Positions 1,686-64,000 of a stretch of DNA of 64,000 nt are shown here, piece by piece. The stretch covers positions 742,156-806,155 of the forward strand of contig JAAOMT010000523.1 of NCBI GenBank assembly GCA_016748015.1, written 5' to 3'. Both the position numbers and the translations under genes were made by a program. The notes below the pieces were generated by a model, which worked only from the letters and a program-made list of their open reading frames with translations, searched no databases and had not been told where the DNA came from. This DNA is from Geosiphon pyriformis uo1 (Eukaryota > Fungi > Glomeromycota). How positions within the stretch are numbered: position 1 is the first letter of the stretch; every line of letters begins with the position of its first letter.

Positions 1686-1731
1686 TGTTTGTTGTTTTGT
1701 TGTTAATTCAAATGAGTGTTGTTTTTATGTT

Positions 1732-3975: not shown

Positions 3976-4099
3976 TTTTATTCCTTGTCCATTGTTGTTG
4001 AAGTATTTGAGTTGTAAGGCAGGCTGGTTTTCAATGAGATAGATGGGTGTTGCTTTAATTTCTTCTGCTGCTTCAGGTTCTCCAAATTTAATTTCGTTC

Positions 4100-32095: not shown

Positions 32096-32099
32096 TCTG

Positions 32100-33700: not shown

Positions 33701-35230
33701 TGTTACAAATAGATTTTTTAGATAGATTTTTTGAGTAAATTTTAAGTAATTTCTATAACTTGGTATTTAAATTTACTGTAATATATTTTAAAGGTTTCTT
33801 AAAAGTGTCGTATTAAAGTTTTTTGTATAATAAATAATAATTTATTAAATAATAATTGGTTATAAACTCAATAATTTTTTTGGTTTAATAACTAATTTAT
33901 TATGGTATTTATATTTTTTTAATAAGTAATTTTAGTTTTTAACTATATTTATACTTTTTTTTGTTATTTTTTATTAAGCAATTCTTAATGTTGTAATTTT
34001 AACACTTTTTTTTACAATTAATTAATAATTTAAATAACACAATTAATAAAATAATAAAATAATAATTAATATTTTATTAATAGCTATAATTAAAAATTAT
34101 TCTAATATTATTAAGTAGTCATTATAAATATTAATAATATTAATATTATAATAATATAAGTTTTAATATAATAGTCTTAAATTTATTAATTAATAAATAA
34201 GATAAAAATTTTTATTAACCAATTTAATTAATTTAAAATAATTAATAAAGTAGAATAATTAGACTAATTTTAAAATAAGCTTGTTTTGTTGTTTTGTTTA
34301 AATAACTAATTAATAAATTGATATTTTTTGATTTCTACTATTTTTATTATATACAAGAGAATATAAAAAATATTGAACATTTTTATAAATATTTTATATA
34401 AAAAAATTAACTTATCAATCATTAATTTTTTATTATTATATTAAAATACATGTTAATATTTTGTTTAACTTCTATTTATTTTAAGAATAACATGAATTTA
34501 ACATAGTATAAACTTGATTAAATTACAATAGTAATTTATAAATATCACATCTCATTTTTTTTAATTTATTGTTTCAATTATATAATATTTAAGGGTTGTA
34601 AATTATGTTAACAAATTTTAACTTTAATATATGACCAAAAATTTTTTATTGGAGTAATATTAAGACTTTGTGTTGGCCAAAGAAGTAATTTAATATTTAA
34701 AAAAACAAAAAAAACATGTAACTTTTGATGTATGAATTAATGTATTGTCTTTCTAAAAAAAAACTTTTTTTTGGTTTTTTTTGCATAAAGTTTTACTAGA
34801 AAATTGCATAATTAGTCAAAATTTTGTGATATATAACTCTAACTAAAACTAAAAAACTTAAACCAACTTATAAAAAACATTTTCAAAACATGTGACCAAA
34901 GCTTTTTTTAACTGTAGTTATAATACAATTTTTATAAAATTTTTTAGAAGATTTATGCTATATATATTCAAATTTTGTAATTTTAAATTGTATATATATA
35001 GATTTATTTGACTAAACAACTTATTTAAAAATTTTTATTGTTTAATTTTCATAAGTACAAATCTATTGTAAATGTTTTATTTTATTTGATTTTTAAAATA
35101 AGATTAAAATATTTAAAAAAGAAGTAATATTTGTTCTTTTTTGTGTTTTTTTTATTTGTTAAAACTACTTGTTTTTATATATATTTTCTAATTTTAAAAG
35201 ATTGTTTTCAATTACTTGTTATTATTAGTT

Positions 35231-35385
35231 ATTATTTGCTATTTCTATTATAACTTTATTTTTTTATAGTATAACTAATTATCTTATGTTATAACTAATT
35301 ATTTTGTGCTATTTTATGTTATTGTGTATTATTTTGTATTATTTTAAATTGTCTTATATTATTTTGTATTATTTTATATTATCAC
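35231..35385. repeat. Degenerate 10-bp tandem repeat (ATTTTGTATT-like)
   Basis: About 15 units with 10-bp periodicity. Confidence 0.6.
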
Positions 35386-37143
35386 ATTTTTTTAATGTTA
35401 TTATGTATTAATTATATTTTTTTACTAATTTTAGATTAGTTTTCTACTTAGATAGTACTACTATTTTAGAGTTTTTTTTAAAGCTATTCTTGTAATTATC
35501 TAATATAGTTTTTTAATTTAGAAACATAAAATATTAATAATCTTTAACATTTTTCTTAATTTTACAATAAAGTTTTTATTAATTAGTAATAATATAAATA
35601 ATTTTGATTAAAAATTATTTTTTTAAGAGATTTGGTTAATAAATAATAATTTTATTTAATAAATAACACAAGTAAGTTTCATAATACTTTAAATTATAAT
35701 AATTCTGTTTTTAATATTATTTTTGATTTCTTTTTAATTTAAAAGTTTTTTTAAAAGTTTATTAGAAGTAAAAACTAACAGATAGTTAAAATAAAAAATT
35801 GAAATTTGGCAAAATTAAACTGTTAAATTAATTGTTGTTTTTTTTAATATTAAAGTTACTATATATATTTGTAGTTTTATAAAAAAACACATTATAATAT
35901 TCTCTTTTTGATATCTTAATTTAGTGTTTATTGCTATTATCAGTTAATACTTATTATTATTATAAGTTTGTATTTGCTGCTATTATAAGATAATAATTGT
36001 TACTATATTAATTATTGTTTTTTTAAAATTATTATGTTATATTATAATTAAATAATTTATATTATTTTGTAATTTTTTTGTTAAATTCTTAAACTGTAAT
36101 AATACTTTGAAAAAAAACAAAAAAATTTGGTTGGTATTTTAAAATATGCACAAAGTACAGTAAATTCTCTTTATAATCACACTTTTTGGTCAACACATTT
36201 GTGGTAACTATAAAGAGATAAGACTATAAAAAATGATTAATATTTTATCACATAATCTATATATCACATGTATAATATAATAACCAATTATATATATTTT
36301 ATTTAAAAAAGCCATCTATTTGCAACTGTTTTTTCTCTTCTTAAACTTTGAGAACAGTATTACAAATTAATGTTTTCAAAGTTTTAAAAAAGTTTGAATC
36401 AATTTTTTCACTATACTGCTCTTCACAATAATGCAATGTATCTTCAAGTGCAATTTTACTTTAATGTGTAGATAGCAAAGACAAAGATTTATATTTATTT
36501 TCACTTTCTAAATCTTCATTTGCATTAGAATTTTTACTATACTTGTTGTTAATAAAATCCACAATTTCATCCTCTGAGGCATAAGTGAATAATAGTTCAA
36601 ACTTGTCAATATTAACATGCTCAATAAAAACTTATATTTCTTGTAGGAATTCTTGTTCAATATTTAATAGATGGGCTAACATTTGACTATTATTCAGAAT
36701 TCCTATATAATGCCAACAGTTTTGGATTGTAGTTGTTGTTACTATTGACCATGCATTAATTAGAAAGTCAATTGCATCCTTTAATATTACTGTTAATATT
36801 GGAATCTTGTCATCATACTGATTAATAAAATGGAAAAGAAACAACTTTCAGTATTGTGCCTTAAAAGATGCAATAATTCCTGCATTTAATGGTTGCAAAT
36901 GGGATGTTGTATTGAATAATAGATATCTAATTATAATATTAGATAATATGAAAGGTTCTCTATCATAGAGATTAGCATTATCAAGCAATAGCAAAATTTT
37001 TTTTTTCTTACAACATATTTCTTCATTTAATAAATTAAGTCATTGACTAAAAATATCAGTTTGCATCCATGTTTTTGTATTGTAATGATAAGTAATTGGA
37101 AATACATTTATATTAATATTGCAAAAACATTGTGGCTTTGCAA

Positions 37144-37974
37144 TATTACAGGTGATTATTTGAGGTCTCAAATTAAATAACAAACCTGTAACTTAGTACT
37201 TAATTGATAGAATTGTTGGTAATATCTGAAGATGTTGTTTTATCTGAAAGTTTTGTTGTGGAGTTTTTTGTATAATGAACAAAAATTTAATTGTTATCTT
37301 CCCAGTAGCCTCCCGGAATCACAATTCCATCAAATTTTTTTTTCAGCATAGTGGCTGGTAATCTGGCAGAGATGCCCTTCTGGTAAGCTATCTGTTAATA
37401 TATATAATTCCTATACCCTTCCTATAGGGTCTTTTACCAAGTTATTCTTAATGTTAATAACTTAGTGCTTAATCTTCAATCAATTAGTAAAACAAAGAAA
37501 ATAAACAAAAGCAATTGCAAATTAGTATCCTGTTAATAGTTATGATCAAGAGCTATTGTTCTAGCATAGTTAAGTATCAATTACTATCAACATGAAGTGT
37601 TGATAGTGGAGGATGAATTGAGATAGTAAATAATTATTTATTAATATTTGTGAATTTGAAAGATTGCTTAGATTAAATCTAAATGAGAAGGTTTCTAACT
37701 AAAAAATTCTGTCTTTTTCTGCTTCTATTATTACTGCTATATATACATAATTGAGATTTCTTAATTCCTCAATTTTTTACACCAGGAATCTTGCAATTCT
37801 TTTTGAGAAGAATCCTGAAATTCTGAAATCTTGCGATTCCTTATATGAGAATTCTGAAATTTCTGGAATCCTGCAATTCCTTTTGAGAAAAATTCTGGAA
37901 TTCTACATTTACTATGGCTACTTCTGATTGGCTAATTTATGCTAATATATACTTCCTATATTCTATGAGTAATA
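37144..37974 (-). repeat. 3' LTR of G2
   Basis: Direct repeat of 46343-47209; purine tract AAAAGAAAGGAATAA (minus strand, 37975-37989) abuts it. Confidence 0.92.
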
Positions 37975-37988
37975 TTATTCCTTTCTTT

Positions 37989-38645
37989 TTAATATTGAGC
38001 TTCGTTGAGATCTTTTAAATCTCCTAACTTTAATTCTCCATCTTTGAGTATTTCTTGAACTTCTTTTTCGAGAATTACTTGTGTTATTTTGTTCTGTAAT
38101 TTTTCAAATTGGGTGTTAGTTATTTTTCCCATTTGGTTAACTATAATAGAGTCCATTTTTGGATTAAGTAAAATTTCTGGTCTGTCTTGGAATCCAGTAT
38201 GCAATCAATAGATAGCTCTTATATGTGTTGTTAGATTGTTCTTTTCCACAAATTGTTCCAGTTGTTGCAGTATTGTTGTGTCAAATAATTGTTTTGTTTT
38301 ATCTGTGTATAAGTTCTGAATATTCAAGCATCATTCCAAGTGGAAATAACAAAAGTTTCTTGGAAATTTGTGTATTCATCATTTCCAAGTTTCTTTGGTT
38401 AACTCTTGATATGTGGTGACACTTGTTGGTTCTTCTATTGCTAATTTTATTTTCAGAACTATTTTGTTAATATTGTTTTCTGTTTTTCTTTGACTTTTGT
38501 ATTTGGGTATTTTTCTGGTATCTTGGTATTAAATAGTTTGTTGATTAATGATGATTTCTATATTCTGTTGTTGAATCAGTTGGAAGAGTTGTTGTGTTAG
38601 TAAGTGGATATTGTTAGTAATTTCCATTTTTCTGAAGTTTTCCAT
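37989..38645 (-). pseudogene. Extra ~218-codon ORF between integrase and PPT of G2
   Basis: ATG at 38645 is in frame with ORF 37989-38204; interrupted only by a few in-frame stops. Confidence 0.6.
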
Positions 38646-38699
38646 TGCATCTACTATGTTTTTATATACTTTTTTTATTGTTCAATTTTATGTGTTTGG

Positions 38700-40050
38700 T
38701 TTAATGATGATAATTGGTTCCAGATCTCATGAAATCTCATCTGGTTGTACTAGTATTCTCTGTACTTCTAATTGTAGAATATTACTGGTAGATGGTAATA
38801 CTATATGGTGATATGGTTTCAATCAATCACCATATGCTGCTTTGTCTAAAATTTTGTTGTCCCATCTTAATTTATAAGCTCTATTTTCAAGAATTTCTTC
38901 TATGTGAAATGGTCCATCCTATTTGGGGTCAAATTTTTCACTCCATTGTTTTTCCACTTTGGTATGATGTAAAAATACTTTGTCTCCAATTTTGAATTCA
39001 ACTGGTTTGTCTGGTAGTTGGTTATCATGTTTTTCTTGTGACTTTTGGATATTATCAGTTGCTTTTCACTGTTTATTTTCTAGTGTTTCCATTAAGTTAT
39101 ATGTTCTTCTTAGCAACATTTCCTGAAAATTGTCTTCAATTATTGGTTTTGTTGGATAAATGGTAACTTTTATCTCAACTGGTAATGTTGCTGTTCTACT
39201 GTATACTAATTTAAATGGTGTTATTTGTGTAGTGTCTTGCTTCATTGTCCGATAAACAAATAATACTAATAGTATAAACAAGTTTCATTCATCCTGGTTT
39301 TTTTGACTGATCTTGGCAATTGCTTTACACAGTGTTTTATTGAATTTTTTTACTAATTTATTGGTTTGTAGATGGTATGGTAATAACAATAGTCTTTTGA
39401 TTCCAAATCTTTGACTTAATTCTGTCAATGTTCTGTTCACAAAGTGGGTTTTTTGATCTAATAGTAGTTCTTTTGGACATCTATGTTGACAGATCAAATC
39501 TTGATGGACGAATTTGGCAAAGAATTCTGCATTTGCTCTTTGAATGGCTTTTGCTTCTGGCCATTTTGTGAGATAATTCATGGCTATTACAATATATCTG
39601 TTGCTTTTGCTGGTGATTGTTAATAGTCTAACTAAGTCAATTCCAATATGGTCAAATGGTTGTCCCACTTTAATTGGTTTTAATGGTTTACTGGGTTTTG
39701 TTCTACCTCTTTTTTGACAAGCATTACAACTTTGAACATATTGGATGATGTCTGAATACATTGATGGCCAATAGTATTTTTTTCTGGTCCTTTCCATGGT
39801 TGCTTCTTTATGAAAATGTTCTGCTGTTGGGTCTGAGTACATGTTAAATAATATTGTCTCTTCTCCAGTTCTGTAATTACTTTGGTTGGTTGGTCTGGAT
39901 TTTTTTTGTTCTTCCAATAAAATATATTTTGATAGTTAATAAAATGTTTTGATTGCTGTTTTATGTTGTTTTGTTCTTTTTGAGATAATTTCTTCTTGAA
40001 CAATTGGGTATTTATATAATGTTAGAGTTGTTGGTATTTTTGTATATTTA
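38700..40050 (-). pseudogene. Integrase of G2
   Basis: ORF 39285-39917: KYYWP..CNACQK, PFDHIGIDL, YLTKWPEA, PYHLQTNKLV. Confidence 0.92.
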
Positions 40051-40081
40051 TCTTTTGTTATATTTTTGGGTTAAAATGTTT

Positions 40082-41450
40082 TTAGATTTGTTTCATTTGT
40101 AACAATCCATCAGTATTTTCATTGTTTTTTTCCTTTTTGTAATGTACTGTATAATTAAATGGTGAAAGTTCTATTTTCTATCTGGCATGGTGATCATCTC
40201 CAAATTTTTGTTTCTGGATTGAAATTAATCCTTTGTGATTAGTGTATACATCAAACTTCTGACTCAAGTATTCTTTCTATTTAATAAAGGCCCAATAGAT
40301 AGCTAAGTGTTCCAGTGCTGGAGTTCCATAGTTTTTTTCTGCTGGACTTAAGCTTCTACTGGCATAAGCTACTAAATGCTCTCTTTCATCCAGTCTTCTT
40401 TGCGATAGTACTGTTCCCAATACTTGACCAGATGCATTGGTTGTTATTATGAATAGCTTGCTGTGATCTGGATAGATCAATATTGGGGCTTGAATAAGCT
40501 TTCTTCTCAATATATCAAAAGCTTCTTGTTGAGTTTCAGTCCATTCATATTTGGTGTTCTTTGTTTGGAGTTGGTATAGTAGTTGAGTTATTTTGGAAAA
40601 GTCTTTAATAAAGTGGCAGTAGTATCCAGCAAATCCCAAGAATGCTCTTAATTCTGTGAGATTATTTGGTACTGGAAAGTTCTTGACAATTTCAATTTTG
40701 TCTGAATCTGTTTTGATTTCATTTTTGCTCATCACATGTCCCAAAAACTTGAGTTCAGTTTTTCCAAAGAAACATTTAGTTGCATTTAGTTTCAATTCAG
40801 CTCTTCTTAATCTTTCAAATACTTGTTGGAGATAATGCAGATGATCATTGAATGTTTTTGAGAACATATTGGTATTATCCAAATATACAACTACTAATTT
40901 CCATAGTAATCCAGTATAGACAATTTCCATGAACTGTTGGAATGTTGCTGAAGTGTTCATCAAGCCAAATGGCATGACTTCAAACTCAAAATTTTTTTTT
41001 TTGTGGTAAATATTGTTTTCTCTTTGTTGGCTGGGTTCATGACTATTTGCCAGTAATCACTATCTAAATCCAGTATCAAGAACCATTTATTTCCTCCAAA
41101 AGCATTGAATAGTTTTTGGATCTTTGGAGTTGGATAACTATCACCTTTAGTTACTTCATTCAGTTTTTGATAATCCATACAAAAACGGATTTTTCCATTT
41201 TTCTTCTGGACTAGTACTATTGGTGATGACCATGGACTTATTAATGACTGAATTAGTCTATTGTCAAGCATCTAATTGATTTCTTGATAAATGATCTCAT
41301 GGCTAGTTAGTGGTACTTTATATGCTCTTTGTTTAATTAGCATTGCATTTTCAGTCTTAATCTAATATTGGATGATGTTGATGTGGCCAAATTTATTTTT
41401 GCTAGCAAAGATGTCATTGCAATTGCTGAGTAATATCTTTAGTTGCATCT
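40082..41450 (-). pseudogene. RT and RNase H of G2
   Basis: SPWSSPIVLV, RFCMDY, MPFGLMN, YLDN, FLGH, AYASRSLSPAEKNY. Confidence 0.93.
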
Positions 41451-41899
41451 GTTGAAGTGGGTCTAGATTTCCCATGTTTATTTGTTCCAATTGTTTTGGT
41501 TGGAGCAGATAATATTCACTTTGTCCATAGATGGTTTGTGATATAATGTCCATATATCTGCAAAGCTGTGGAAAATCTGGAATGTAGTTTGGTGGTTGAT
41601 CTTCAACTTTGGTGGTTAAATATCCAATAATAGTTCCTTTTGGTATTTCAATAACACTTCCCATTGTGTTGTAGATAAGAATTTTGATGTTTTTGGGGCT
41701 TTTGGCTAATATGTAGAGATTAGTGAGTCCAATTTCTCCTGATTTATAAATGGTGACTTCTGCTTTAAACAACTAAGCTTGATTTTTTACTTCTCTTTTT
41801 ATGGCTAACATATACTGGTCATATGGTAGAATAGAAATTGGTTGATGGGTTGATATAATTTCTCCTTTGTCAATAACCTTTTCCTCTGCCATATTAACT

Positions 41900-42306
41900 G
41901 GTACATCTATTCTATCTGTTGATCCAAATTCCTGTATCCCTCTTGCTGTTATCTCTAATTCTTTTCTGTTTCCCACTAATACTAATTTAGCTATTTTAAC
42001 CAGGGGTAGAAATATTGCCTGTGCTATTTTTTTGTTTGGATCTATGGTGTAAGTTTTTTTTGAGTCATTTTGTAGCATAGCAATAATATTTCCCACATAT
42101 TCTGCATTAATTATTCTTCCTTTGATGTTGATTCCCTTTTTCGCTAGGCTACTTCTAAATGCTAATTGTATTATAGTTGTTGCTGGAATTTCTAGTGCTA
42201 TTTTGAGATCAATACTGATGTGCAAATGGGATTCTAATTTGATGACATCCTTCCCTGGATATCTTAAATCAAACTCTGCATCGGTATTATACACACATTC
42301 TGGCAT
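41900..42306 (-). pseudogene. dUTPase of G2
   Basis: TDAEFDLRYP, RSSLAKKG, IINAEYVGNI, KIAQAIF, RGIQEFGST. Confidence 0.9.
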
Positions 42307-42559
42307 GATACCTTTATTATTGTTATTATACTATTTGAGTTTCTGCTTCTTGAAGAGATCAAAAAGCACAATATATATTTCAGAGTTTGAATTGGAGTTT
42401 AAATCATTGATATTTTTGTTGCCATTTTGAACAAAGCTAGAACTGTTATTTTCATTGTCATCATTGTCGGAGTTTGAATCAGGATTAAAATTTGATTCCA
42501 ATTCTGATGTGCAGCTGCTCATTGGTTTGTTTTCTTTAGGAATTGTATAGATTATATAT

Positions 42560-43915
42560 GGTGATAGATTGTAAATGAGGTCACACTCATTACAATATTA
42601 AAAGTCACATAAGATTAAGTAATGTTAACATAATCGAGTATTTAACTGCTCTAAATGCTGCTTTTGTTCTTCTCTAGTGGGTGTTAAATACTGGTAATGT
42701 TCATGGAATTCTTCTGGGTTGTTTTCAATGTTGCCAAAAATGTCAAAGGTTTGGACATATTCGGGTTTAGGAAGAGATAAAAAATTGTTTTTGATTTTCA
42801 GTAGTTTGCTAGTTGTTGCATCTTCTGCTTTTGCACTTGTTATTCTCCATAATTTGTGTTCATTGTGGGAGTATTCTTCCAATTGTCGCAATGCTCATTT
42901 CTAAGCATTGTCAATTGGTGTGCTCTTGTGTACCCAATCATTGATTAGGATTGTATACTAACACATTTCATTACATGTTCCTCCTTGTCCAGAAATATTG
43001 TTCCACATTCCTTTATCTGGGAGAGTTTCTCCACAAGCCAAGCATAGTTCATTGTCCTATTTTCCAACTTGTTTTGGTCTTCTAAAGCATTCAATAATGC
43101 ATGAGTGGCAGTAAAATTTGGTTGCCAAAGTGTACTCTTCATTGTTGCCACAACAAACACTCATTGATGACAATTTCTTGCCACAATCAATGCATATCAG
43201 TTTTGGGTAGTGATAAGTGGATTGTTGGAGTGTAGTGTAGAAATTATAAGTAGTGGTGCTGTCAGGTGTTGGTTTTTCTACCTTCTCCTTTTTTTTTTCC
43301 TTTTTTATTTTTTTCTTACTCTCAATTTATTAGTCCTTTCTGGTTATTGTTGGTTTCTCAGACTTGGTCAGTATTCTAGGTAAGTTCTTCCTTCTACTTT
43401 TCTTTGTTGTTGTCATCCCAGAATAATATTGGTGGTAGTTTGTTGTGGTTATTGTCAGTCCACAAGACTTGATAAGCTTCCCAAGTAGGTTTCTCTTTTT
43501 CTTCTTTGAAGTCGATGAGTGGTCACATCTTAATGCTGAGTTTGAAATGGCCATGTGTTGTTGGTACTCATGTGTATCAGCCATTCTGACTAATTTGCAA
43601 CTCTTGTGTTGTCTAGTCAAACATTATGTTGGTTTTAAATAGCCAGTCATTACCAACTAAAGCTTGATACTGAGTAGCTTCTATGACCAAAACTTTGATT
43701 GGTACTGTAATACCATTGACTTCAATCGGGAAGTCATCTATTTCACCAATAGGAGTTTTAGTCACTCCATTGGCTGTAATGATTCTGGCACTAGTAGTGT
43801 GGTCAACTTGGCAACCTAATTGATCCATGAGTTGCTTGGTAATGATGCTGTCAGCTGATCCACTATCTAGAATCAGTTTGATGACATGATCATCAACTTT
43901 TGCATCAATGTACAT
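42560..43915 (-). pseudogene. Protease followed by Cys-rich domain (G2)
   Basis: LILDSGSA..ALVGNDWL (43613-44158); CIDCGK, FYCHSC, LCLACGE, GGTCNEMC clusters downstream. Confidence 0.85.
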
Positions 43916-44499
43916 GGCGGTAATTGGTTTAGTGTTAAGAGCAGTTCTACTGAATAATGAGACTGGTGTGGTTTCCTCAAATTCGAATGGAAAAATTGTG
44001 GCTAGTGATTTGTCATTGGTTACAGTAGCTGGAGGTATATTGCTAATAAGTAATTTGTGTTGATTGGATTTCCAGTTGTTGGGTGAGACATCTTCTGAAG
44101 TAACCAGAAGACTTAAATAGTGTTGGGCATTTGGGTTTTGGGAGTTCTCAGTACTCAAATTCCATTGTCAAGATCCTGATGGCTGGTTTGAGAAACTGGG
44201 GATTGGTTGATGGACTACTATCAACAATCTTCAGCTTTGTTGGATCAATTTCAGTCTTTGGGTTCTATTTTGAGATAAAGTTCTGTGGCAGTGTTTGAAT
44301 TTGTTGAGGCTGATAAATTACCTGAGGCTGCGGCTAATAAATGTGTTGGGGCTGTGGTTGATAACTGACAGATGTTGTTGGCTGATAAATTGGTAGTTGA
44401 TAAATTGGCTGTTGTATTATAAGTAGGTAATTCAATTGATACAGTTTTGGTAATTAATTACTGATGTAATTCCAAGTTTGTAATTGGTGATCAGAGTTT

Positions 44500-46300
44500 T
44501 GATATTGATGGTCTGATTTTTGTTCATTTAGCTGTTTACAGCATTCAAACTATAAATGTTTTTGTTTACCACAATAGTGGCAAGCACGTGTTCTTTGCTG
44601 CCACTGTTAATTGGTCGAGGATGTTGGACATGACTAATTCTGGAAATAATTCACGTTTTTGGAATTATTACATTGTTGTAATGGTTGATAAATTGTGCAA
44701 TTGTCAGCTAAGTATTCTTCTAATTTTTGATTGATAAAATCACTAAATTGTTTCAATTTGGAATCCAATTCAGATGATCTATTTATTACTAGATTAACAG
44801 CTTAGGCATGGTTAACTTCAAGTTCAGCTGCTTCAAAATCTCTGGTGTTTATAACTGCAGCTTAGAGGTCTGCTAGATGCATAGGGTGTATACATTGGAG
44901 GATGCTACTGTGCAGACCTTTAATAAATTGATTTAGAATTTGTGGTGCTGTGAAATAATCAGCTTGTATGGCCTGAATTTGGCACAGATTTTTGTGAAAG
45001 CATCCTAAGTAAGTAGTGACTGCTTCATTTTTTCTTTGTTTAATGATGGTGAAAGTGTTTTCTAGGCAATTAATGCTGTTATTATTACTGAAATATCCTA
45101 AGAATACAACTTTAAATTTCTGGAATGTTTGAGATTTGACAGCTAAACTTTGATATCACAAGTCAGCAGTATCCTGTAAGAAATAGAAGATGACTTGGAG
45201 TGTTTTCATGTCATTCTATCCATTAACCATGATGGCTTTTTCAATATTGTTGAGCCATATTTGGACATCATTCTCTTTGCTGGTAAACTTCTCAAGTTTT
45301 GCTATTGGAACATAGGCCATTGGATCCAAGTTCAGTTGTTGTTGTTATTGTGGTAGTAATTGAATCAGAGGTTGTGACAGTGGTTGTTGTGGTGTGTCAA
45401 CTGGTAGTAGGTCAATTGCTGGAGATAAGTGGTGTTGATTATTAATGTTGGGATTTTGATTGTTCTGATTGTGCTGCATTTGAAAATTTGGAGTTTCGAT
45501 TTCTGGATTTTCTAAATTCAGATTTTGCTGAGTTTGAAAGTTCAGGATTTCAATGTCCAGATTTTCTGGAATTGGGTTTTGGTAAGTAAACTCTTGATCT
45601 TTGGTTTCTTCTTCTTCTTTTTTATCTGATTCTGTTATCTTCCAAGGACTCATGTTTCCGAAATCTAGTTAAAGTGACAGTGATCGGAATCCTGATGGTG
45701 TTGGTGATCACAATTTAAATTCTTTAAAATAATCACCATAGATTTCCAGTAATTCTGCTTTCTTTTGTTTACTTTGAAATAGAAGTCATCCAAATGTAGA
45801 TGTCACATGTGATGTTGATGTGTCTGTTAATAAGATATTGATAGCACTTCCTGATATGTAATAGTATAATGGATTGGTTGGTGATTTAACTCTGGTTTTC
45901 TTCCAAGTAGGTAGTTGTATTTGTTTTGGTGTTACTACTAGTGTTTGCAATCTTCTTTTGCCTTTGTCTATGTAAGTAATAGAGAATTTTTGTTGTGTGT
46001 ATTTTTCAATGGTTTGATTGATTTTCCTGATGATTGGTACAAAACTGTAGTTTTTTGGTAAGCTGGTATGTTGAAATAATTCTGTATAAAAATTTTTCCT
46101 TGCAGATTCAATATTAACTGTTCCTCCTAAGCAGTCTGTGATTTTATCATTAATGTAAAAGTTAAAGGTGAATTCTGCTGAGAAGTGGTTATAGTTTAGT
46201 CCTAATTGTTGGCTGTATTGTTAGAACAAGGATTTAGTGAATCTTAAATGGTTTGCTCCTATGTTTTCTAATTCTGCCACTTTTAGATGATTGTTGTTGG
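44500..46300 (-). pseudogene. gag of G2
   Basis: MAYVPIAKLEKF, QFIKGL, CHYCGKQKH knuckle near 44545-44582. Confidence 0.85.
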
Positions 46301-46330
46301 TGCTGGTTCTTTGTAAGATTATACCTTAGA

Positions 46331-46340
46331 GAGAGCACCA
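46331..46340 (-). promoter_or_regulatory. Primer-binding site of G2
   Basis: TGGTGCTCTC two bases from the LTR end. Confidence 0.87.
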
Positions 46341-46342
46341 AA

Positions 46343-47209
46343 TGTTACAGGTGATTATTTGGGGTCTCAAATCAAATAACAAACTCATAACTTAGTGCTT
46401 AATTGATAGGATTGTTGGTAATATTTGAAGGTGTTGTTTTATCTGAAGGTTTTGTTGTGGAGTTTTTTGTATAATAGACAGAAATTTAATTGTTATCTTC
46501 CTAGTAGCCTCCCAGAATTGCAATTTTGTCAAATTTTTTTCTCAGCATGATGGCTGGTAATCTAGTAGAAATGTCCTTCTGGTAAGCTATCTGTTAATAT
46601 ATATAATTTCTATATTCTTCCTGTGGGGTCTTTTATCAAGCTATCTTTGACATCAATAACTCAGCACTTAACCCTTAATCAATTAGTAAAACAAAGAAAT
46701 AAAAGAAAATAAAAGAAAATAAACAAAAGCAATTACAAATTAGTATCCCATTAATAGCCGTAATCAAAAACTATTGTTCCAGTATGGTTAAATATCAATT
46801 ACTATCAACATGAAGTGTTGATAGTAGAGGGTGGATTGAAATAGTGAATAATTATTTATTAATATTTGTGAATTTGAAAGGTTGCTTAGATTAAATCTAA
46901 ATGAGGAGGTTTCTAACTAAAGGATTCTGTTTCTTTCTGCTTCTATCACTACTGCTATATATACATAATTGAGATTCCTTAATTTCTCAATTCTTCACAC
47001 CAGGAATTCTGAAATTCTTAGAATCCTGCAATTTCTCTTAAGAGAAATCCTGGAATTCTAAAATTCTGTGATTTCTTGTACAAAAATCCTGAAATTTCTG
47101 AAATCCTGCAATTTTTTTTGAGAGGAATCCTAGAATTCCATATTTACTATGGCTATTTTTGATTGGCTAATTTATGCTAATATTTACTTCCTATATTCTA
47201 TGAGTAACA
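46343..47209 (-). repeat. 5' LTR of G2
   Basis: TGTTAC...GTAACA inverted termini; contains CCAAT, GGAATTCC-type array and TATATATAG. Confidence 0.93.
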
Positions 47210-48158
47210 ATGGTTTTGCCAATAATTAAAGGCTGCAACTTGATGCTGCCTGTTGTATTATAAGCAAGAAGTATGGTAATTCAACTCTTATCATGCTTGG
47301 TGCCAGAGATAAATTTTGTTGCCAAAGTTGCATTTGGTAACATTCTAAAGAATAATGCTGTCTCATTGGCATTGTAAACATTATTTAGATCATATTTACT
47401 GATAATCTTATGCAGTTTTTTTCATTCCTCTGGTAAAATTTCCAAAAGAGCACTGATTGCTTCATCATGCATCTTAATGTGATACAAATTATAACATTTT
47501 TTGAACTTTTCTAACCAACCATCTGATGCTTTAAAGTTATTTTCTTCTAGAAACTTTTTAGCAAATTTGAGGGCTTTTGTTTGTAAAATTTTTCCAGTAA
47601 GAATGCAGTTGGTAGCTAGTGTGCCAAGCATCCATTCTTCCAGTGTGTCATTTATTTTCAGAAACATTTCTTTCCTGTTCTTTGTCAATTGACCAGAGTT
47701 GTCAGATATATTCTTTTCAATCTATTGGTCTGATTTTATGAGTATCTTTGTTACAGTAGAGCAGTTAATCTTTAGATTAAATATTTGATAAGTCTATTTG
47801 CTGAGTAGTCAGAATGTTCTAGTTTGTACTGGCAGAGAGCCTTTTTAGTCTCTAAGGAAATTGCTGCTCATTTTTGGTTCATGTTTTTTGGCATGTTAAT
47901 AAGAATATACTTTTTATTGCATTTTGCTTTTATAATACATTGATGTATCTGTTATGTCTTAAATGTCATTTTGTCTTATATTTAATTGGACATGTGAAGT
48001 GTCTTATGTCATATGAGGTGCCTTAGATTATAAAAAGTGGCCAAATTATAAAAATGAAAGTTTTAATCCAACTGTAGAATTCTAAGTGCAAATAACAGAT
48101 TTTTGGTAAAAATAAATCTAATTTTGATAATGCATCTGTGACACTTTTTGTCTCTTAC

Positions 48159-48271
48159 CCCTAACTGATGATCAATAATAAAGACTGTCAATTTAATCTT
48201 CCATATACTTGCATAATCATCTAGAAGATAACACAATGTTATGTTGTCAAGCCCCTCAAACACAGCAACAT
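48159..48271 (-). pseudogene. Captured exon resembling the TilS (tRNA-Ile lysidine synthase) PP-loop N-terminus
   Basis: VAVFEGLDNITLCYLL..LTVFIIDHQL resembles VAVSGGxDSMAL..L.AFxVDH.L; bounded by TAG acceptor and GTAAGA donor. Confidence 0.7.
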
Positions 48272-48349
48272 CTATATCAATTATATAAATATTATAGCTA
48301 ATAGAAGTGGTTGACAATTTATTTCCCCACTCTAAAAACACTTACTGAC

Positions 48350-48930
48350 ATGCTTCACAAGTTTATTAATTAAAAACATAATGATAAAACATAAAGCATC
48401 ACAATCCATTTTTAATGCCAATAAGGCAACATATTGTGAATTCATTTTATCAATTATCTATGGTGTTGTATTAGTATTTAATGGCTAAGTCAAGGTTTGT
48501 TCGCAATATAAGATATCTGAGAGCTATGGAAAGGAACCAGTTGATTGGACAATCAAGGTACATGATATGATAATTGTAATTACAGAGGCAAAGCAGAAGA
48601 TATCAATTAAAATGTTGACCAATATATAATTCAACTTCAAAGCATCTATGCAATGTAATAAAAAACATTCTTATGACATAGCCTTGCAAGAAATTGAGAT
48701 GTTTGGAATAATTACTGTGAGTGATTAGGTAATTATTAAAGTGGTTTCAAGCAGAATCAATGATAATAGTAAAGTTGAGATATTGTTAAGTTTGTGCTCT
48801 CCTCTTTCCTTGTCTATTAGTGAGGCAACATTGAATAAAAACCTTTTGTGTGGTCAACTTGAAAGCTTGTTTGGTCAGATCAAGTGGAGTTTTGACCAAC
48901 AAATTGAGTCTTAGAGTTTAAGTAAATGAC
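48350..48930 (+). pseudogene. Captured Crinkler-type restriction-endonuclease-like domain fragment
   Basis: NKATYCEFILSIIYGV..YKISESYGKEPVDWTIK..IVITEAK..MFGII..*VIIK resembles the EATRxEFI..GxGPVD..EAK..GI pattern of CRN C-terminal PD-(D/E)xK domains; assigned by pattern recognition. Confidence 0.62.
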
Positions 48931-48939
48931 AACATATGG

Positions 48940-49665
48940 AATTCACTCTTATTCTGATTAACACTATTATACTCATAGCAATAACCTAAATTGTATATTG
49001 CAATAAAACTCCCTACATCAACCACCTTTTAATATAATTTGACTCCTTTACTCTTGTCCTATTAATGTTTTTGCTATACTCATAGCAATAATCTAACCAA
49101 TTCATTACACCAGAATTCCCTACATCAACTACAATTTGAAAAAATTTGATCACTTCACTCATGTTCTGATAAATGCATTTGCCATTAAAGTAACAATAAC
49201 CTATCTAATTTATTGTTCCAGAATTTTTCATATCAGCCATCTTTTGATACAATTTAACAGCTTGATCCATGTTCTAATTGATGCATTTGCCATTAAAGTA
49301 GCAATATTCTAATCGAGTTATTGTTTCAGAATTTCCTGTATTACTTGTCTTTTGATACAATTTAACAGCTTGATTTATGTTCTGATTGATATTTTTATCA
49401 TATTGATTGCAATGACCTAATTGAGTCATTGCTTCAAAATTTTCTGCATCAACAGCCTTTTGATATAATTCAACCCCTTGACTTTTGTTCTAATTAATAC
49501 CTTCATTATGCTAATAGCAATAACCTAAATTTTTTATTGTAGCAGAATTCTCTGCATTATTTGTTTTTTGATATAATTTGACAGCTTAATCCATGTTCTG
49601 ATTAACATCTTTGCTGTAAAAGTAGCAATTTTCTAATTTATCTATTGTTGCAGAGTTTCTAGTAT
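48940..49665 (-). pseudogene. Captured Sel1-like repeat gene fragment (~7 repeats)
   Basis: 108-bp period; units such as AMT(Q)LGHC.QY..NQAVKLYQK..GNS and NLGYCYEY. Confidence 0.88.
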
Positions 49666-49734
49666 TTAAACAGAATAGATAGTAAAAATCTAATTCAAGA
49701 TTTTTACATTTTTAAAAAATACTTCCAAACAGCC

Positions 49735-50105
49735 ACAACAATTAACATGACAATGATAATTTAGTTCACATACCTTCCAATAGCCTTAACAATTGATACA
49801 ACAATAATAATTCAGTCACTTACCTCTTAATGGTTTCAATAATCAATGCAACAATAATAATTAGATTTACTTACCTTTGGATAGTCTTAGTAATTAATGC
49901 AACAATAATAATTCACTTATCTTTAGACAGCTATGACAATTTACATGAATATATTAATCAAATTTGCTTATCTCTAAATGGTTATGGCAATCAATGTGAC
50001 AATAATAATCAGATTCACTTATCTTTGGATAGTCTCAACAATTAATGTAACAATAATAATTTACTTCATTTATCTTTGGATAGTTATGGCAATTATTACA
50101 GCAAT
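49735..50105. repeat. ~51-bp tandem array in pogo copy A
   Basis: Units like CAATGCAACAATAATAATTAGATTTACTTACCTTTGGATAGTCTTAGTAAT, ~7 copies. Confidence 0.8.
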
Positions 50106-50789
50106 GCTAAATAAATTTACTTAGTGGCTTGGGCAATTATTCAATATTTATTACCAAAGCAAAGCAGAGCATGCTATTTTACACCAATTTGCTTGTTGTA
50201 ACTTTTAAAATTATACCAATAAAATAATAAATTAATGAATAAAGCAAACAATAATAGATTAATATAAGTCTTATTATTGCAATACTTAAATGCAAAATAG
50301 AATCAACATTTTAAAATCATATTTGGGACATCTTTTATAATCTGAAGTATTTTACATGTCCAATTAAATATGAGATGCTATTTAATGTTTATATCTAATA
50401 TCATATGATTATAGTGTGACTATAGAGAGTGGAAATTACTTATATTTTGCTATCATATTTGTGGAAATAGGGACTATAAGAAGATATATATAGTAAAAAT
50501 AACTATAAAGAGATAATATTATATATAAATGGTTTTGGTTTTAAAAAAATGTGATTATAAGAAGATAGTGACTATAATCAAAGAGACTATAGAAAGAGTT
50601 TACTGTATATAATTTTATAAGTTAATTCTATTATAAAATGGTTTAACAAAAATAAAAATATATACCAAGTTTATTAGATTTTTTAGACATATTTATAATA
50701 GTTATATTAATAAGATTATAATAAATTTTAATTTGTCTAATAGATATAAAGTTTTTAATAGATTGAATTAAAGTAAAGTTTTTTTTTTA

Positions 50790-57125: not shown

Positions 57126-58294
57126 CCGATTTAAACTCTGACAATAACAACAATGAAAACAATGGTTCCAGTTCTATGCAAATTAGCAATAACAACAATA
57201 TTAATTCAAACTCAGATTTAAATCCTGAACAATACATTACACTCCTTGATCTTACCAAAGAGCAAATCCTGAAATAGTTTAGTAATAATAACAAAGACAT
57301 TATGTCTGAATGTGCACATGATACAGATGCAGAGTTTGATCTAAGATATCCAGGAAAAGATGTTATCAAATTGAAACCACATTTATGCATCTGCATTGAT
57401 CTAAAAATAGCCATAGAAATTTCAGTAACAACAATGGTTTAGTTAGCATCTAAAAGTAATTTAGTGAAAAAAAGAATCAACATCAAAGGAGAAATAATTG
57501 ATGCAGGATATGTAGGAAATATCATTGCAATGTTATAAAATAACTTAGAAAAGGCTTACATCATAAAACCAAACAAAAAGATAACACAGGCAATATTTCT
57601 GCCTCTGGTTAAAATAGCTCAATTAGTATCAGTAAAAAACAAAAAAAAATTAGAAATTATAGCTAAAGAGATACAGAGATTTGAATCAACAGATAGAATA
57701 GATGTATTAGTTAATATGGCAAAGGAAAAAATTGTTGACAAAAGAGAAATTATCTCTACTTATCAATCAATTTCTATTCCACCATATGACTAGTACAGTA
57801 AACTCTCTCTATAGTCTCTCTGGTTATAGTTACTATCTTCTTATAATCACATTTTTTTAAAAACCAAAACCATTTATATATAATATTATCTCCTTATAGT
57901 TATTTTTACTATATATATCTCCTTATAGTCTTTATCTCCACAAATATAATAGCAGAATATAAGTAATTTCCACTCTCTATAGTCACACTATAATCATATA
58001 ATATTAGATATGAACATCAGATATTATCTTATATTTAATTGGACATGTAAAATACTTCAGATTATAAAAGATGTCCCAAATATGATTTTAAAATGTTGAT
58101 CCTATTTTGCATTTAAGTATTGCAATAATAAGACTTATATTAATCTATTATTGTTTGCTTTATTCATTAATTTATTATTTTATTGGTATAATTTTAAAAG
58201 TTACAACAAGCAAATTGGTGTAAAATAGCATACTCTGCTTTGCCTTGGTGGCAAATATTAAATAATTGTCTAAGCCACTAAGTAAATTTATTTA

Positions 58295-58670
58295 GCATTG
58301 CTGTAATAATTGCCATAACTATCCAAAGGTAAGTGAAGTAAATTATTATTGTTACATTGATTGTCAAAACTATTCAAAGGTAAATGAATCTGATTATTAT
58401 TGTCATATTGATTGCCATAACCATTTAAAAGTAAGTAAATTTGATTAATATATTTGTGTGAATTGTCATAGCTGTCTAAAGATAAGTGAATTACTATTGT
58501 TGTATTGATTACTAAGACCATCCAAAGATAAGTAAATCTGATTATTATTGTTGCATTGATTGTTGAGGCCATTAAGAGATAAGTAACTGAATTATTATTG
58601 TTGCATTGATTGTTAAGACTATTGGGAAGTAAGCAAACTGAATTATCATTGTTATATTAATTGTTGTGGC
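58295..58670. repeat. ~51-bp tandem array in pogo copy B
   Basis: Reverse complement of 49735-50105. Confidence 0.8.
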
Positions 58671-58731
58671 TGTTTAGAGGTATTTTTTAAAAATGTAAAA
58701 ATCTTGAATTAGATTTTTACTATTCATTCAG

Positions 58732-59465
58732 TTTAAATGCTGGAAACTCTGCAGCAATGGATAAATTAGGAAATTGCTACTTTTATAGCAAAAGTATTAA
58801 TTAGAACATGGGTCAAAGCTGTCAAATTATATCAAAAAACAAGTGATGCAGAAAATTCTGCTACAATGAACAATTTAAGTTATTGCTATCAACATAATGA
58901 AGGTATTAATTAGAACAAAAGTCAAGGAGTTAAATTATATTAAAAGGCTGTTAATGAAAAAAATTCTGAAGCAATAACTTGATTAGATTGTTGCTATCAA
59001 TATGGTAAAAGTGTCAATTAGGACATAGATCAAGTTATCAAATTGTATTAAAAGGCAAGTGATGCAGAGAATTCTAAAGCAATAACTCAATTAGAACATT
59101 GCTATTTTAATGGCAAATGTGTTGATCAGAACATGGATCAAGCTGTCATATTGTATTGAAAGGCAGCTAATGCAAAAGATTTTGGGACAATGAATTAGAT
59201 AGGTTATTGCTACTTTAATAGCAAATGCGTCGATCAGGACACAAGTAAAGTAGTCAAATTTTTTTGAATTGTAGTTGATGCAGAGAATTTTGGTGCAATA
59301 AATTGGTTAGGTTATTGCTATAAGTATGACAAAGACATCAATAGAACAAGAATAAAGTGGTCAAATTATATCAAAAAGTGGTTAATGCAGGGAGTTTTAT
59401 TGCAATATACAATTTAAGTTATTGCTATGAGTGTGGTGGTGTTAATCAAAATAAAAGTAAATTCT
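58732..59465 (+). pseudogene. Sel1-like repeat fragment in copy B
   Basis: AGNSAAMDKLGNCYF..AVKLYQK..ATMNNLSYCYQ..CYFNGKCVDQNMDQAV..AINWLGYCY; preceded by a GT..CAG intron at 58680-58731. Confidence 0.88.
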
Positions 59466-59469
59466 ATAC

Positions 59470-60055
59470 ATTGTTGTTTATTTAAACTCTGAGACTTAAT
59501 TTGTTGGTTAAAATCCCACTTGATTTGACCAAACAAGCTTTCAAGTTGACTACACAAAAAGTTTTTATTTAATGTTGTCTTACTAATAGACAAGGAAAGA
59601 AGGGAGCATGAACTTAACAATACCTCAACTTTACTATTATTGTTGATCTCACTTGAAACCACTTTGATAATTACCTAATTACTCACAGTGATTATTCCAA
59701 ACATCTCAATTTCTTGCAAGGCTATGTTATAAGAATGTTTTTTATTATGTTGCATAAATGTTTTGAAGTTAAATCATATATTGGTTCACATCTTAATTAA
59801 TATTTTCTGCTTTGCCTTTGTAATTACAATTATTATATTATGTACCTTGATTGCCCAATCAACTGGTTTCTTTCCATAGCTTTCAGATATCTTATATTGT
59901 GAATAAACCTTAACTTAGCCATTAAATACTGATACAACACCATAGATAATTGATAAAATAAATTCACAATATGTTGCCTTATTGGCATTAAAAATAGATT
60001 GTGATGCTTTATGTTTCATTATTATGTTTTTAATTAATAAATTCATGAAGCATGT
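59470..60055 (-). pseudogene. Crinkler-type nuclease fragment in copy B
   Basis: Reverse complement of 48350-48930; includes ORF 59414-59662. Confidence 0.62.
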
Positions 60056-60131
60056 CAGTAAGTATTTTTAAAATGGAGAAATAAATTGTCAACCACTTCC
60101 ATTAGCTGTGATGTTTACATGATTGATATAA

Positions 60132-60244
60132 GTGTTGCTGTGTTTGGGAGACTTGACAACATAACATTATGCTATCTTCTATATGATTATGCAAGTATAT
60201 GAAGAATCAAATTGACAGCCTTCATTATTGATTATCAGTTAGGG
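60132..60244 (+). pseudogene. TilS-like exon in copy B
   Basis: VAVFGRLDNITLCYLLYDYASI*RIKLTAFIIDYQL. Confidence 0.68.
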
Positions 60245-60508
60245 ATAAGAGACAAAAAGTGTCACAGATGTATTATTAAAATTAGGTTTTTTTTTACCAA
60301 GAATCTGTTGTTTGCACTTAGAATTCTACAGTTAGATTAAAACCTTTATTTTTATAATTTGGCTGTTTTTTATAATCTAAGGCATCTTATATAACATAAG
60401 ACACCTCACATGTCCAATTAAATATAAGGCAAAATGACGTTTAAGACATAACAGATACATCAATGTATTATAAAAGCAAAATGCAATAAAAAGTGTGTTC
60501 TTATTAAC

Positions 60509-62067
60509 ATGCCAAAAAATGTGAACCAAAAGTGAGCAGCAATCTCTTTAGAGACTAAAAAGGCTCTCTGCCAGTACAAACTAGAGCATTCTGATTACTC
60601 AGCAAATAGACTTATCAAAATATTTAATTTAAAGATTGACTGCTCTACTGTAACAAAGATACTCATGAAATAAGACTGATAAATTGAAAAAAATGTATCT
60701 GGCAACTTTGGTCAATTGACAAAGGACAGGAAAGAAATGTTTTTGAAGATAAATGATGCACTGGGAGAATGAATGCTTGAAGCACTAGCTACCAACTGCA
60801 TTCTTACTGGAAAAATTTTACAAACAAAAGCCTTCAAGTTTGCTGAAAAGTTTCTGGAAGAAAATAACTTTAAAGCATCAGATAGTTGGTTAGAAAAGTT
60901 CAAGAAACATCATAATTTGCGCCATATTAAGATACATGGTAAAGCAAACAATGCCCCCTTGGAAATTTTATCAGAGGAACAAGAGAAACTGCATAAGATT
61001 ATTAGTAAATATAATCTAAATAATGTTTACAATTCCAATAAGACAGCATTATTCTTTAGAATGCTACCAAATACAACTTTGGCAACAAAATCTACCTCTG
61101 GCACCAAGCATGATAAGAGTCGAAATACCATACTTCTTGCTTGTAATACAACAGGCAGCATTAAGTTGCAGCTTTTAATTATCTGCAAAGCTGCAAAACC
61201 ACAATGTTTTCACAATATTAATATGAATGCACTTCTAATTACTTATTGTTACAATACAAAAGCATAGATGCAAACCAATATTTTTAGTGAATAACTTAAT
61301 TCATTAAATGAAAAAATGCATCACAAGAAAAAAAAATTTTGCTATTGCTTGATAATGCTGGTCCCCATGGTAGAAAATCTTCTGTATTATCTAATATTAT
61401 GATTAAATATCTACCATCCAATACAACATCTCATTTGCAACCATTAAATGCAGGAATTATTGCATCTTTTAAGGCACAATACCGAAAGTTGTTTCTTTTC
61501 TATTTTATTAATCAGTATAATGACAAGATTCCAATATTAACAGTAACATTAAAGGATGCAATTGACTTTCTAATTGATATATGGTCAGTAGTAACAACAA
61601 CTACAATCCAAAACTGTTGGCATTATATGGGAATTCTGAATAATAGTCAAATGTCAGCCCATCCATTAGATATTGAACAAAAATTCCTACAAGAAATATA
61701 AGTTTTTATTAAGCACATTGATATTGACAAGCTATTGGCAATAGACTTCATTAATATTGACAAGTTTGAATCATTATTCACTTATGTCTCAGAGTATGAA
61801 ATTGTGGATCTTATTACTAACAAGTATAATAGAAATTCTAATGCAAATAAAGATTTAAAAAGTGAAGATAAAGATGAATATTTGTTTTTACTATCTATAT
61901 ATCAATGTAAAACTACACTTGAAGATACATTGTGCTATTGTGAAAAGCAGTATAGTAAAAAAGTTGATTCAGACTTTTTTAAAACTTTAAGAACATTAAT
62001 TTGTAATACTGTTTTCAAAGTTCAAGAAAAAAAAAAACAGTTGCAAATAGATAGCTTTTTTAAATAA
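60509..62067 (+). pseudogene. CENP-B/Tigger-like DDE transposase of copy B
   Basis: ORFs 60773-61267, 61339-61701 and 61735-62067: FKASDSWLEKFK, VYNSNKTALFF, LLLDNAGPH, LPSNTTSHLQPLNAG, KKQLQIDSFFK. Confidence 0.93.
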
Positions 62068-63320
62068 AAAATATATAATTGGTTATTATATTATACATGT
62101 AATATATAAATCATGTAATAAAATATTAATCATTTTTTATAGTTACTACAAATGTGCTGACCAAAAGTAGTAATTATAAAAAGAGTTCATTGTACATGAT
62201 AACCATAGAAAGAAAAGTAAAAAATCAGGTTCAGATTTTTGAGGCCAAAGCAACACTTTGTAAATCAGAAAAAATCAGATTAGTCAATCTATACATACCA
62301 GCCAAGAATTACAGTAACATTAAAATTTCCATTTACAACAACACGGAAAATGTTATCAAAATATCAAAAAGAAACACTATTGAATACTTAACTATTAAAA
62401 TCAAAAACCAACTGCCAAACACCATTCCAGATTTTTCACAACTGTGCAAATACATAAACATCACATTTCAAACAATATACAGATGAGAAAAATGTTATTT
62501 GCTCTAACCAAAACAATTGGAACAGATAAATTTGGGAAATCTAGACCCACTACAATATATGCAATTTAAGATGTTACTTAACAACTTTAAAAACATTTTT
62601 GCAAGTAAAAATGAATTTGGAAGAACTAACATAATCCAGCATCAAATTAAGACTGAAGATGCAATGCCAATTAAACAAAGAGCATACAAAGTACCACTAG
62701 CCAGCCATAAGATCATTCATCAAGAAATCAATCGGATGCTTAACAACAGACTAATTCAGTCATCAATGAGCTCATGGTCATCACCAGTGGTACTAGTCCA
62801 TAAGAAAAATGGGAAAATCCACTTTTGTGTGAATTACTGGAAACTGAATAGAGTAACCAAAAAAGATAGCTATTCAACTTCAAAAATCCAAGAACTGTTT
62901 GATGTTTTTGGAGGAAAGAAATAGTTCTCGACTTTAGACTTAGATAGCAGTTACTGGCAAGTAGCCATGAAACCAAAAGACAAAGAAAAAAGGGCTTTTA
63001 CAATTCGAAAAGGAAACTTTAAATTCAAAGTGATACTATTTGGCTTAATAAATGCTTCCACCATATTTTAATGGCTTATAGAAATTGTCTATACTAGACT
63101 GCTATAGAAATCAGTAGTCATATATCTGAATGATACCAATGTGTTCTCAAACACATTTGATGATCACTTATATCATCTCCAACAAGTATTTGAAAGACTA
63201 AGAAGAGCCAGATTGAAGCTAAATACAACTAAGTGTTTCTTTGGAAAAACTGAACTCAAATTTTTGGAACATGTTATAAGCAAAGACAGAATCAAAACAA
63301 ATTCAGACAAAATTGAGATA

Positions 63321-64000
63321 CAGTAAACTCTCTTTATAATCACACCTTTTGGTTAGCACATTTGTGGTAACTATAGAGAGATGGGACTATAAAAAATGAT
63401 TAATATTTTATTACATGATTTATATATTACATGTATAATATAATAACCAATTATATATATTTTATTTAAAAAAGCTATCTATTTGCAACTGTTTTTTCTT
63501 TTTTTAAACTTTGAGAACAGTATTACAAATTAATATTCTCAAAGTTTTAAAAAAGTCTGAATTAACTTTTTTACTATACTGCTTTTTACAATAGCACAAT
63601 GTATCTTCAAGTGCAATTTTACCTTAATGTATAAATAGCAAAGATAAAAGTTTATCTTTATTTTTACTTTCTAAATCTTCATTTGCATTAGAATTTCTAT
63701 TATACTTGTTGTTAATAAGATTCACAATTTCATCCTCTGAGGCATAAGTAAATAATAGTTCAAACTTGTCAATATTAATAAAGTTTATTGTCAATAGCTT
63801 ATCAATATCAATGTGCTCAATAAGAACTTGTACTTTTTATAGAAATTTTTGTTCAATATCTAATAGATGGGCTGGCATTTAACTATTATTCAGAATTCCC
63901 ATATAACGCCAACAGTTTTGGATTGTAGTTGTTGTTACTACTGACCATGTATCAATTAGAAAGTCAACTGCATCCTTTAATGTTACTGTTAATATTGAAA
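63321..64000 (-). mobile_element. pogo/Tigger copy C (3' TIR and transposase C-terminus; continues beyond the window)
   Basis: TA|CAGTAAACTCTCTTTATAATCAC inside the G3 RT; closely matches 36158 onward. Confidence 0.92.

Follow-up and report, generated by a model that had tools for sequence, protein, structure and literature searches.

A Hypermutated pogo/Tigger-Type Transposon Subfamily Carrying Sel1 and Crinkler-Type Gene Fragments in Geosiphon pyriformis

We analyzed a 64,000-nucleotide stretch of the genome of the fungus Geosiphon pyriformis uo1 (assembly GCA_016748015.1, contig JAAOMT010000523.1, positions 742,156 to 806,155 of the forward strand), which we call the window. A first-pass annotation made from the sequence had described in it a pogo/Tigger transposon that moved pieces of Sel1, Crinkler-type and TilS-like genes. 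We found that the element at 57796-62192 on the plus strand, hereafter copy B, is a pogo/Tigger-type (Tc1/mariner-related) DNA transposon. Copy B is very probably a dead member of a minor subfamily that captured a block of Sel1 and Crinkler sequence, spread it through the genome as a unit and was later ruined by C-to-T mutation.

Copy B is a complete cargo-type pogo element of 4,397 bp with a TA dinucleotide on each side (57794-57795 and 62193-62194). Its left end reads CAGTAAACTCTCTCTATAG... and its right end is inverted and of the ...CTTTTTATAATTAC type. The left terminal inverted repeat (TIR) lies at 57796-57816 on the plus strand (CAGTAAACTCTCTCTATAGTC) and has its right partner at 62172-62192. 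TIRs of the form CAGT(A/G)AACTCTCT... are present at both ends, and in copy C, a second element of the family at the right edge of the window, they pair as 21 nt at 86%. B sits within a Gypsy-like element, and another Gypsy copy, in inverse orientation at about 40.6-42.5 kb, matches both of its flanks. The paralogue preserves the empty site of B near 41813, where GACCAG-TA-TATGTTAGCC corresponds to GACTAG-TA-[B]-TA-CATGATAACC at the occupied site; the junction is exact and carries a single TA. The empty site of copy C is visible in the same paralogue near 40689. Siblings of B elsewhere in the genome are 86-89% identical to it. In the four complete copies whose surroundings can be read (B, copy A, L002 and L007), both ends adjoin a TA, and the flanks are unrelated.

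The second cargo copy in the window, copy A (36158-50605, minus strand), occupies an unrelated TA site and is split by an LTR (long terminal repeat) retrotransposon of ~10 kb at about 37159-47214, the LTR pair of which lies at 37142-37975 and 46341-47210. A and B are 88-92% identical over their whole length, about 89% overall, and the layout that had been proposed for both (TIR, 51-bp array, Sel1 repeats, a nuclease on the opposite strand, PP-loop piece, transposase, TIR) is real in each. A third copy with the same cargo had been expected to begin at 63321. This element, copy C (63321-64000, minus strand), is the right end of a transposon that measures 4,267 bp in full and runs past the window as L034:77-4343. 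By blastn it shares only B 1-254 and B 2327-4397, and between them it has a different interior of 1,925 bp with neither the Sel1 nor the Crinkler block; it is therefore not a cargo copy but a member of the majority subfamily described below, with a different captured gene fragment. The retrotransposon within A is Gypsy-like, and B and C lie within another Gypsy copy of the same family that extends from about 50.7 kb to beyond the end of the window. From this reciprocal nesting it follows that the periods of activity of the pogo and Gypsy families overlapped.

The family was searched for in the whole assembly (128.3 Mb, 792 contigs). With the whole of B as query there were 46 matches, and 40 places were scored among 236 candidates. 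The majority of the matches cover only B 2327-4397 and have conserved upstream sequence unlike that of B, and at least 30 of the 40 scored places hold such majority-type copies. When the interior of B was used alone, the whole interior was recovered at nine places, two on contig C692 and one each on C439, C716, C595, C702, C701, C423 and C599. About nine further places hold only its first 1,151-1,227 bp, which is the left half of the cargo region. About nine others, at 75-77% identity, match positions 1-633 and 1982-2071 of the interior query with only 45-100 bp between the two matches. Because these 75-77% copies lack the intervening sequence, the 1.35 kb at element positions 888-2235 (58683-60030), which hold the Sel1 and Crinkler-type nuclease fragments and define the subfamily, appear to be an addition relative to a related lineage. 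Over the 2.07 kb that B-type and majority copies share, we found one near-fixed difference and no indel.

Several parts of B belong to the wider family. The left terminal 254 bp (57796-58049, plus strand) are common to the majority subfamily, with blastn aligning B 1-254 to C 1-254 at 90%. A 51-bp tandem array of 7.7 copies was identified by Tandem Repeats Finder at 58279-58664. Since it lies within interior-query positions 1-633, which are shared at 75-77% with the subfamily free of Sel1 and nuclease sequence, the array appears to be part of the older backbone, outside the captured block. B also has an internal inverted repeat, with a left arm at 58021-58073 and a right arm at 60383-60435 (53 nt, 75% complementary, with a 21-nt exact core; ~45 nt at 80% once C>T changes are allowed for), which encloses the array together with the cargo and the PP-loop piece. 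A 22-nt core of this repeat occurs at the same places in copy C. We considered a nested element that would have this repeat at its two ends, but no target duplication was seen beside the repeat in B.

The reading frames of the cargo are broken, so they were searched piecewise with natural stop-free pieces of B and its siblings, and read-through was obtained by aligning intact proteins from databases to the unaltered DNA with tblastn. The Sel1-repeat fragment (58733-59464, plus strand) comprises seven 36-aa units with a 108-bp period and is cut in mid-repeat at both ends. Read in one frame, the copies give classic units, ...AVKLYQKA.DAGNS.AM..LG.CY..G.GV.Q, and five natural pieces score 34-67 bits against the PF08238 cut-off of 30.7. 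The best are L008 (2e-18, 66.6 bits) and L006 (1.8e-12), with others at 1.3e-9 and 3.5e-8; in copy A the piece at 49277-49489 (minus strand) matches at 2e-8. B's own pieces reach only E 0.007-0.12. The Sel1 assignment is thus borne out by the sibling copies. All eight sequenced copies share one stop and one frameshift in the fragment.

The other half of the block is a broken C-terminal PD-(D/E)xK (HSDR_N-like) nuclease domain from a Crinkler-family gene (59474-60019, minus strand), recognized by phmmer and tblastn. Its frame shows the D...ExK pattern, although B itself has a substitution at the ExK glutamate. A phmmer search with a 75-aa natural piece (L003) against 1.84 billion representatives returned nine proteins, P0001-P0009. 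Residues 1-187 of P0007 aligned by tblastn to element positions 2224-1679 in one frame (41% identity, E 5e-39), and this protein is 41-49% identical to the copies over about 180 residues. The P0007 cluster includes Rhizophagus proteins, one of them named "Crinkler family protein", and its R. irregularis members P0016 and P0014 have a Crinkler plus HSDR_N-like architecture. Residues 233-357 of P0002 (NCBI CAG8496530.1, labelled Paraglomus occultum) are 57-63% identical to, and collinear with, the eight copies. P0002 also carries an N-terminal Crinkler PF20147 domain at residues 52-118 (29.3 bits versus a cut-off of 24.6), whereas the cargo aligns only from residue 233 on and has no counterpart of this header.

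The modular Crinkler (CRN) proteins include some with a restriction-endonuclease-fold C-terminus, and the cargo aligns collinearly with the HSDR_N-like C-terminus of Crinkler-headed Glomeromycotina proteins, which upholds the earlier call of a Crinkler-type nuclease. Unlike those proteins, the cargo holds the C-terminal domain only and several stops. B has four in-frame stops within the aligned stretch. Five stops in the nuclease frame recur in every one of the eight copies; two fall within the aligned domain and three just outside it. Pfam found no match in B's own stop-free nuclease and PP-loop pieces, so that sibling copies and homologue searches were needed. A PDB profile search with the nuclease catalytic piece gave no match even at E 10, and an ESM Atlas look-up with the 75-aa piece gave no usable match. 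Profiles of two nuclease pieces run against the fungus's own genome recovered only the nine element copies and one other match of 24.5 bits.

Between the block and the transposase gene lies a putative N-terminal PP-loop fragment (60122-60337, plus strand), recognized through matches of sibling copies to PF01171 (TilS-like, ATP_bind_3). It begins within four codons of the point at which the subfamilies diverge. Because it falls within the 2.07 kb common to B-type and majority copies, it should be older than the Sel1 and nuclease block. The view that the cargo was moved as one unit by a transposase-bearing pogo element stands, but its three pieces did not arrive in one acquisition.

The majority subfamily carries a cargo of its own, namely about 290-326 codons of a Glomeromycotina gene. 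On the minus strand of its interior, a 326-codon frame is free of ancestral stops as judged from 22 copies (L034:2108-3085 on the plus strand of that locus, equal to copy C 1259-2236, minus strand). Homologues were found in Diversispora epigaea, Gigaspora rosea, G. margarita and many environmental contigs. At the Diversispora epigaea locus (L035:5866-6732) amino-acid identity is 62% over 289 codons; the homology stops at the subfamily breakpoint, and there is no transposase homology within 6 kb of the match. No Pfam domain was found in the homologues, and pieces of the majority subfamily itself gave only a sub-threshold PP-loop match and chance-level matches. The gene piece and the PP-loop piece abut at 2180-2185 in copy C coordinates with no spacer.

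The transposase pseudogene of B spans 519 codons from its ATG (60509-62067, plus strand) and has HTH_Tnp_Tc5 (PF03221, 1.5e-9) and DDE_1 (PF03184, 8.9e-22) domains, both above their cut-offs. The frame of the family as a whole has 538 codons and begins 54 bp before the ATG; over its length B has eight in-frame stops. Among the 22 majority copies no stop is common to 70% or more over the 538 codons. The frame was thus ancestrally open in the majority, and the founder of the family encoded a full transposase. In B-type copies, codon 27 is a stop in 6/7 and codon 76 in 7/7, compared with 27% and 32% of majority copies. This comparison was made in the frame of the majority subfamily, since a map of shared stops in the B-type transposase is misleading where many stop sites are mutation hot spots. 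As the two early stops may be inherited, the B-type founder was probably defective and moved in trans by the transposase of the majority subfamily.

All copies have been inactivated by extreme C-to-T hypermutation. Cargo copies compared pairwise differ at about 12% of positions, with a ratio of transitions to transversions of about 30:1, and all pairs are roughly equidistant. In the 22 majority copies (L009-L030), each copy has changes at about 20% of its ancestral C and 22% of its ancestral G, whereas A/T transitions and transversions each stand at 0.1%. C>T changes reached 50% in the CpG context and 14-22% in the others. When the LTRs of the Gypsy element inside A are compared (37142-37785 and 46341-47003), 64 transitions stand against 3 transversions over 600 nt. 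At 28001-36000, adjoining the transposon cluster, the window contains stretches of 13-14% G+C, the composition expected of near-complete C>T hypermutation. Repeat-induced point mutation (RIP) of ascomycetes is similar in that nearly all changes are C>T and G>A in repeats and affect every copy, and either strand, to much the same extent. It differs in that the changes described here show no CpA preference; CpG is struck most, and every context is affected.

We suggest that the family took up foreign DNA more than once, with foreign coding sequence entering, as at least three separate pieces, the same interval of roughly 2 kb between the left end and the transposase gene. The PP-loop fragment would have come first, as it is present in both sequenced subfamilies, and the majority subfamily would then have gained its Glomeromycotina gene. 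The B subfamily instead carries the 51-bp array and the 1.35-kb chimeric block, an internal piece of a Sel1 gene joined tail to tail, with no spacer, to the C-terminal nuclease domain of a Crinkler-family gene; the two homologies abut at element position ~1669-1679. Capture may have occurred by template switching during repair of an excision gap, and the spacerless joins would fit filler DNA. Both fragments were probably pseudogenes already in the founder, since they are truncated and their stops, together with the Sel1 frameshift, are common to all eight sequenced copies. The composite then spread as a single unit and reached at least nine TA sites; in about nine more copies only the left half of the cargo region is present. 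Massive C-to-T mutation later ruined all copies. The genome-wide DNA search with the cargo fits movement as a unit, in that the same cargo is found in nine full copies and the four readable complete ones are TA-flanked with unrelated surroundings.

Several observations weigh against parts of this account. The first-pass annotation had envisaged three host loci as parents of the cargo. We found none in the G. pyriformis genome, either for the block at the DNA level or for the nuclease by protein profiles, where the 24.5-bit match was the only one outside the elements; capture from this host is therefore inferred rather than seen. The borders of the 1.35-kb block were placed from alignment coordinates alone, and the internal inverted repeat is left unaccounted for. 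Some transposase stop sites are mutation hot spots, struck in up to 68% of majority copies, so inheritance of the stops at codons 27 and 76 is likely but not certain. The TilS-like assignment is tentative: PF01171 is matched by 13 of 16 natural copies (best E 8e-6; 20.7 bits for the first member), but every match is below the 27-bit cut-off and covers only positions 4-50 of the 182 in the profile. The SGGxDS motif is also degenerate, with F for the first S in 22/22 copies and N at the last position in almost all (FGGLDN is commonest), and a PDB profile search with the PP-loop alignment gave no match.

The strongest alternative to capture by the pogo element, although we consider it improbable, is that some other mobile element, such as a Pack-MULE or Helitron fragment already carrying the gene pieces, inserted the block into one pogo copy, which was then amplified, so that pogo captured nothing. 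The block is indeed a discrete 1.35-kb addition relative to the related subfamily, and B does contain an internal inverted repeat. In R. irregularis, moreover, Mutator-like elements (MULEs) lie close to Sel1 and kinase genes, and a link between them has been proposed (PMC8647823). However, no inverted repeat was among those found in B at the block borders (element positions ~888 and ~2235), the block occurs nowhere in the genome outside pogo copies, and the internal inverted repeat encloses a longer stretch and occurs as well in the majority subfamily, where the block is absent.

A functional role of the cargo for the host or the element, either as a source of small RNAs directed against Sel1 and Crinkler families or as raw material for new genes, has a still smaller chance of being correct. 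These families are expanded in Glomeromycotina (PMC8647823, PMC11952901), and the convergent fragments could yield double-stranded RNA if both were transcribed. Set against this, the fragments are truncated with stops shared by all eight sequenced copies, C>T changes affect about 20% of cytosines in all copies, and apart from the one weak match noted above the genome has no close Crinkler-nuclease gene that could serve as a target. The sequence gives no sign of any activity of the carried fragments, and the suggestion that the cargo feeds the expansion of these families finds no support. Finally, it is extremely unlikely that A and B are products of segmental duplication rather than transposition: they lie less than 22 kb apart in a repeat-rich region, but their flanks are unrelated, both copies end in the same inverted repeats with TA beyond them, an exact empty site of B exists in the paralogous Gypsy copy and seven further copies lie on other contigs, and on the strength of the empty site and the differing flanks, the latter being the point on which the first-pass annotation had staked its reading, we exclude duplication.

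Within the reading of capture by the pogo family itself, a further possibility, which we regard as speculative, is that the family has a defined "cargo bay" between the left end and the transposase gene, flanked by the ~45-nt internal inverted repeats, in which unrelated fragments (the PP-loop piece, the Glomeromycotina gene of the majority subfamily, and Sel1 with the Crinkler nuclease) were swapped in on at least three occasions, each without a spacer.

At 4.3-4.4 kb, with its transposase gene preceded by about 2.4 kb of non-transposase DNA, the element would be unusually long for the pogo/Tigger/Fot1 group. It resembles that group (IS630-Tc1-mariner; PMC7386202) in its TA duplication, its short CAGT-type TIRs and its Tc5/CENP-B-type helix-turn-helix and DDE_1 domains. 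Gene capture had been taken to be described mainly for MULE, CACTA and Helitron elements, but capture by Mariner/Tc1-type elements has already been published for rice Pack-Mariner (Gisby & Catoni 2022, PMC8903248) and for a Tc1/Mariner element of Pyrenophora tritici-repentis (Manning et al. 2013, PMC3538342), which makes the present case less novel than first held. Pack-Mariner likewise combines TIRs and a TA duplication with several unrelated gene fragments, low copy number and chimeric, non-functional fragments (PMC8903248). Its host is a plant, whereas that of B is a fungus in which no donor loci were found. Being non-autonomous, with no transposase gene, is part of the definition of Pack-TYPE elements, whereas the B subfamily retains a full-length one, a single near-fixed site apart from the majority in the shared 2.07 kb, and is therefore not Pack-TYPE in the strict sense. 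The Pyrenophora element is closer in some respects: it is a fungal member of the Tc1/Mariner superfamily, it holds a transposase and a sequestered foreign frame between its TIRs, and it has copies genome-wide. Its transduplication is represented by 31 near-identical copies with both frames intact and transcribed (PMC3538342), in contrast to the truncated and broken fragments, hypermutated copies and sister subfamilies with different cargo described here.

This work adds a clear fungal case from an early-diverging lineage of Glomeromycotina, in which a transposase-bearing pogo element moved Sel1 and Crinkler-type fragments and its sister subfamilies carry other pieces. The hypermutation is a more surprising observation than the gene capture, as a study of arbuscular mycorrhizal fungi reported that RIP signatures were not detected in this fungal group (PMC8647823). 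Transposon-borne pseudogene pieces of this kind can also inflate counts of "expanded" Sel1 and Crinkler genes during repeat annotation. If the cargo bay were real, it would point to a recurrent capture mechanism specific to this transposase-encoding Tc1/mariner-type transposon.

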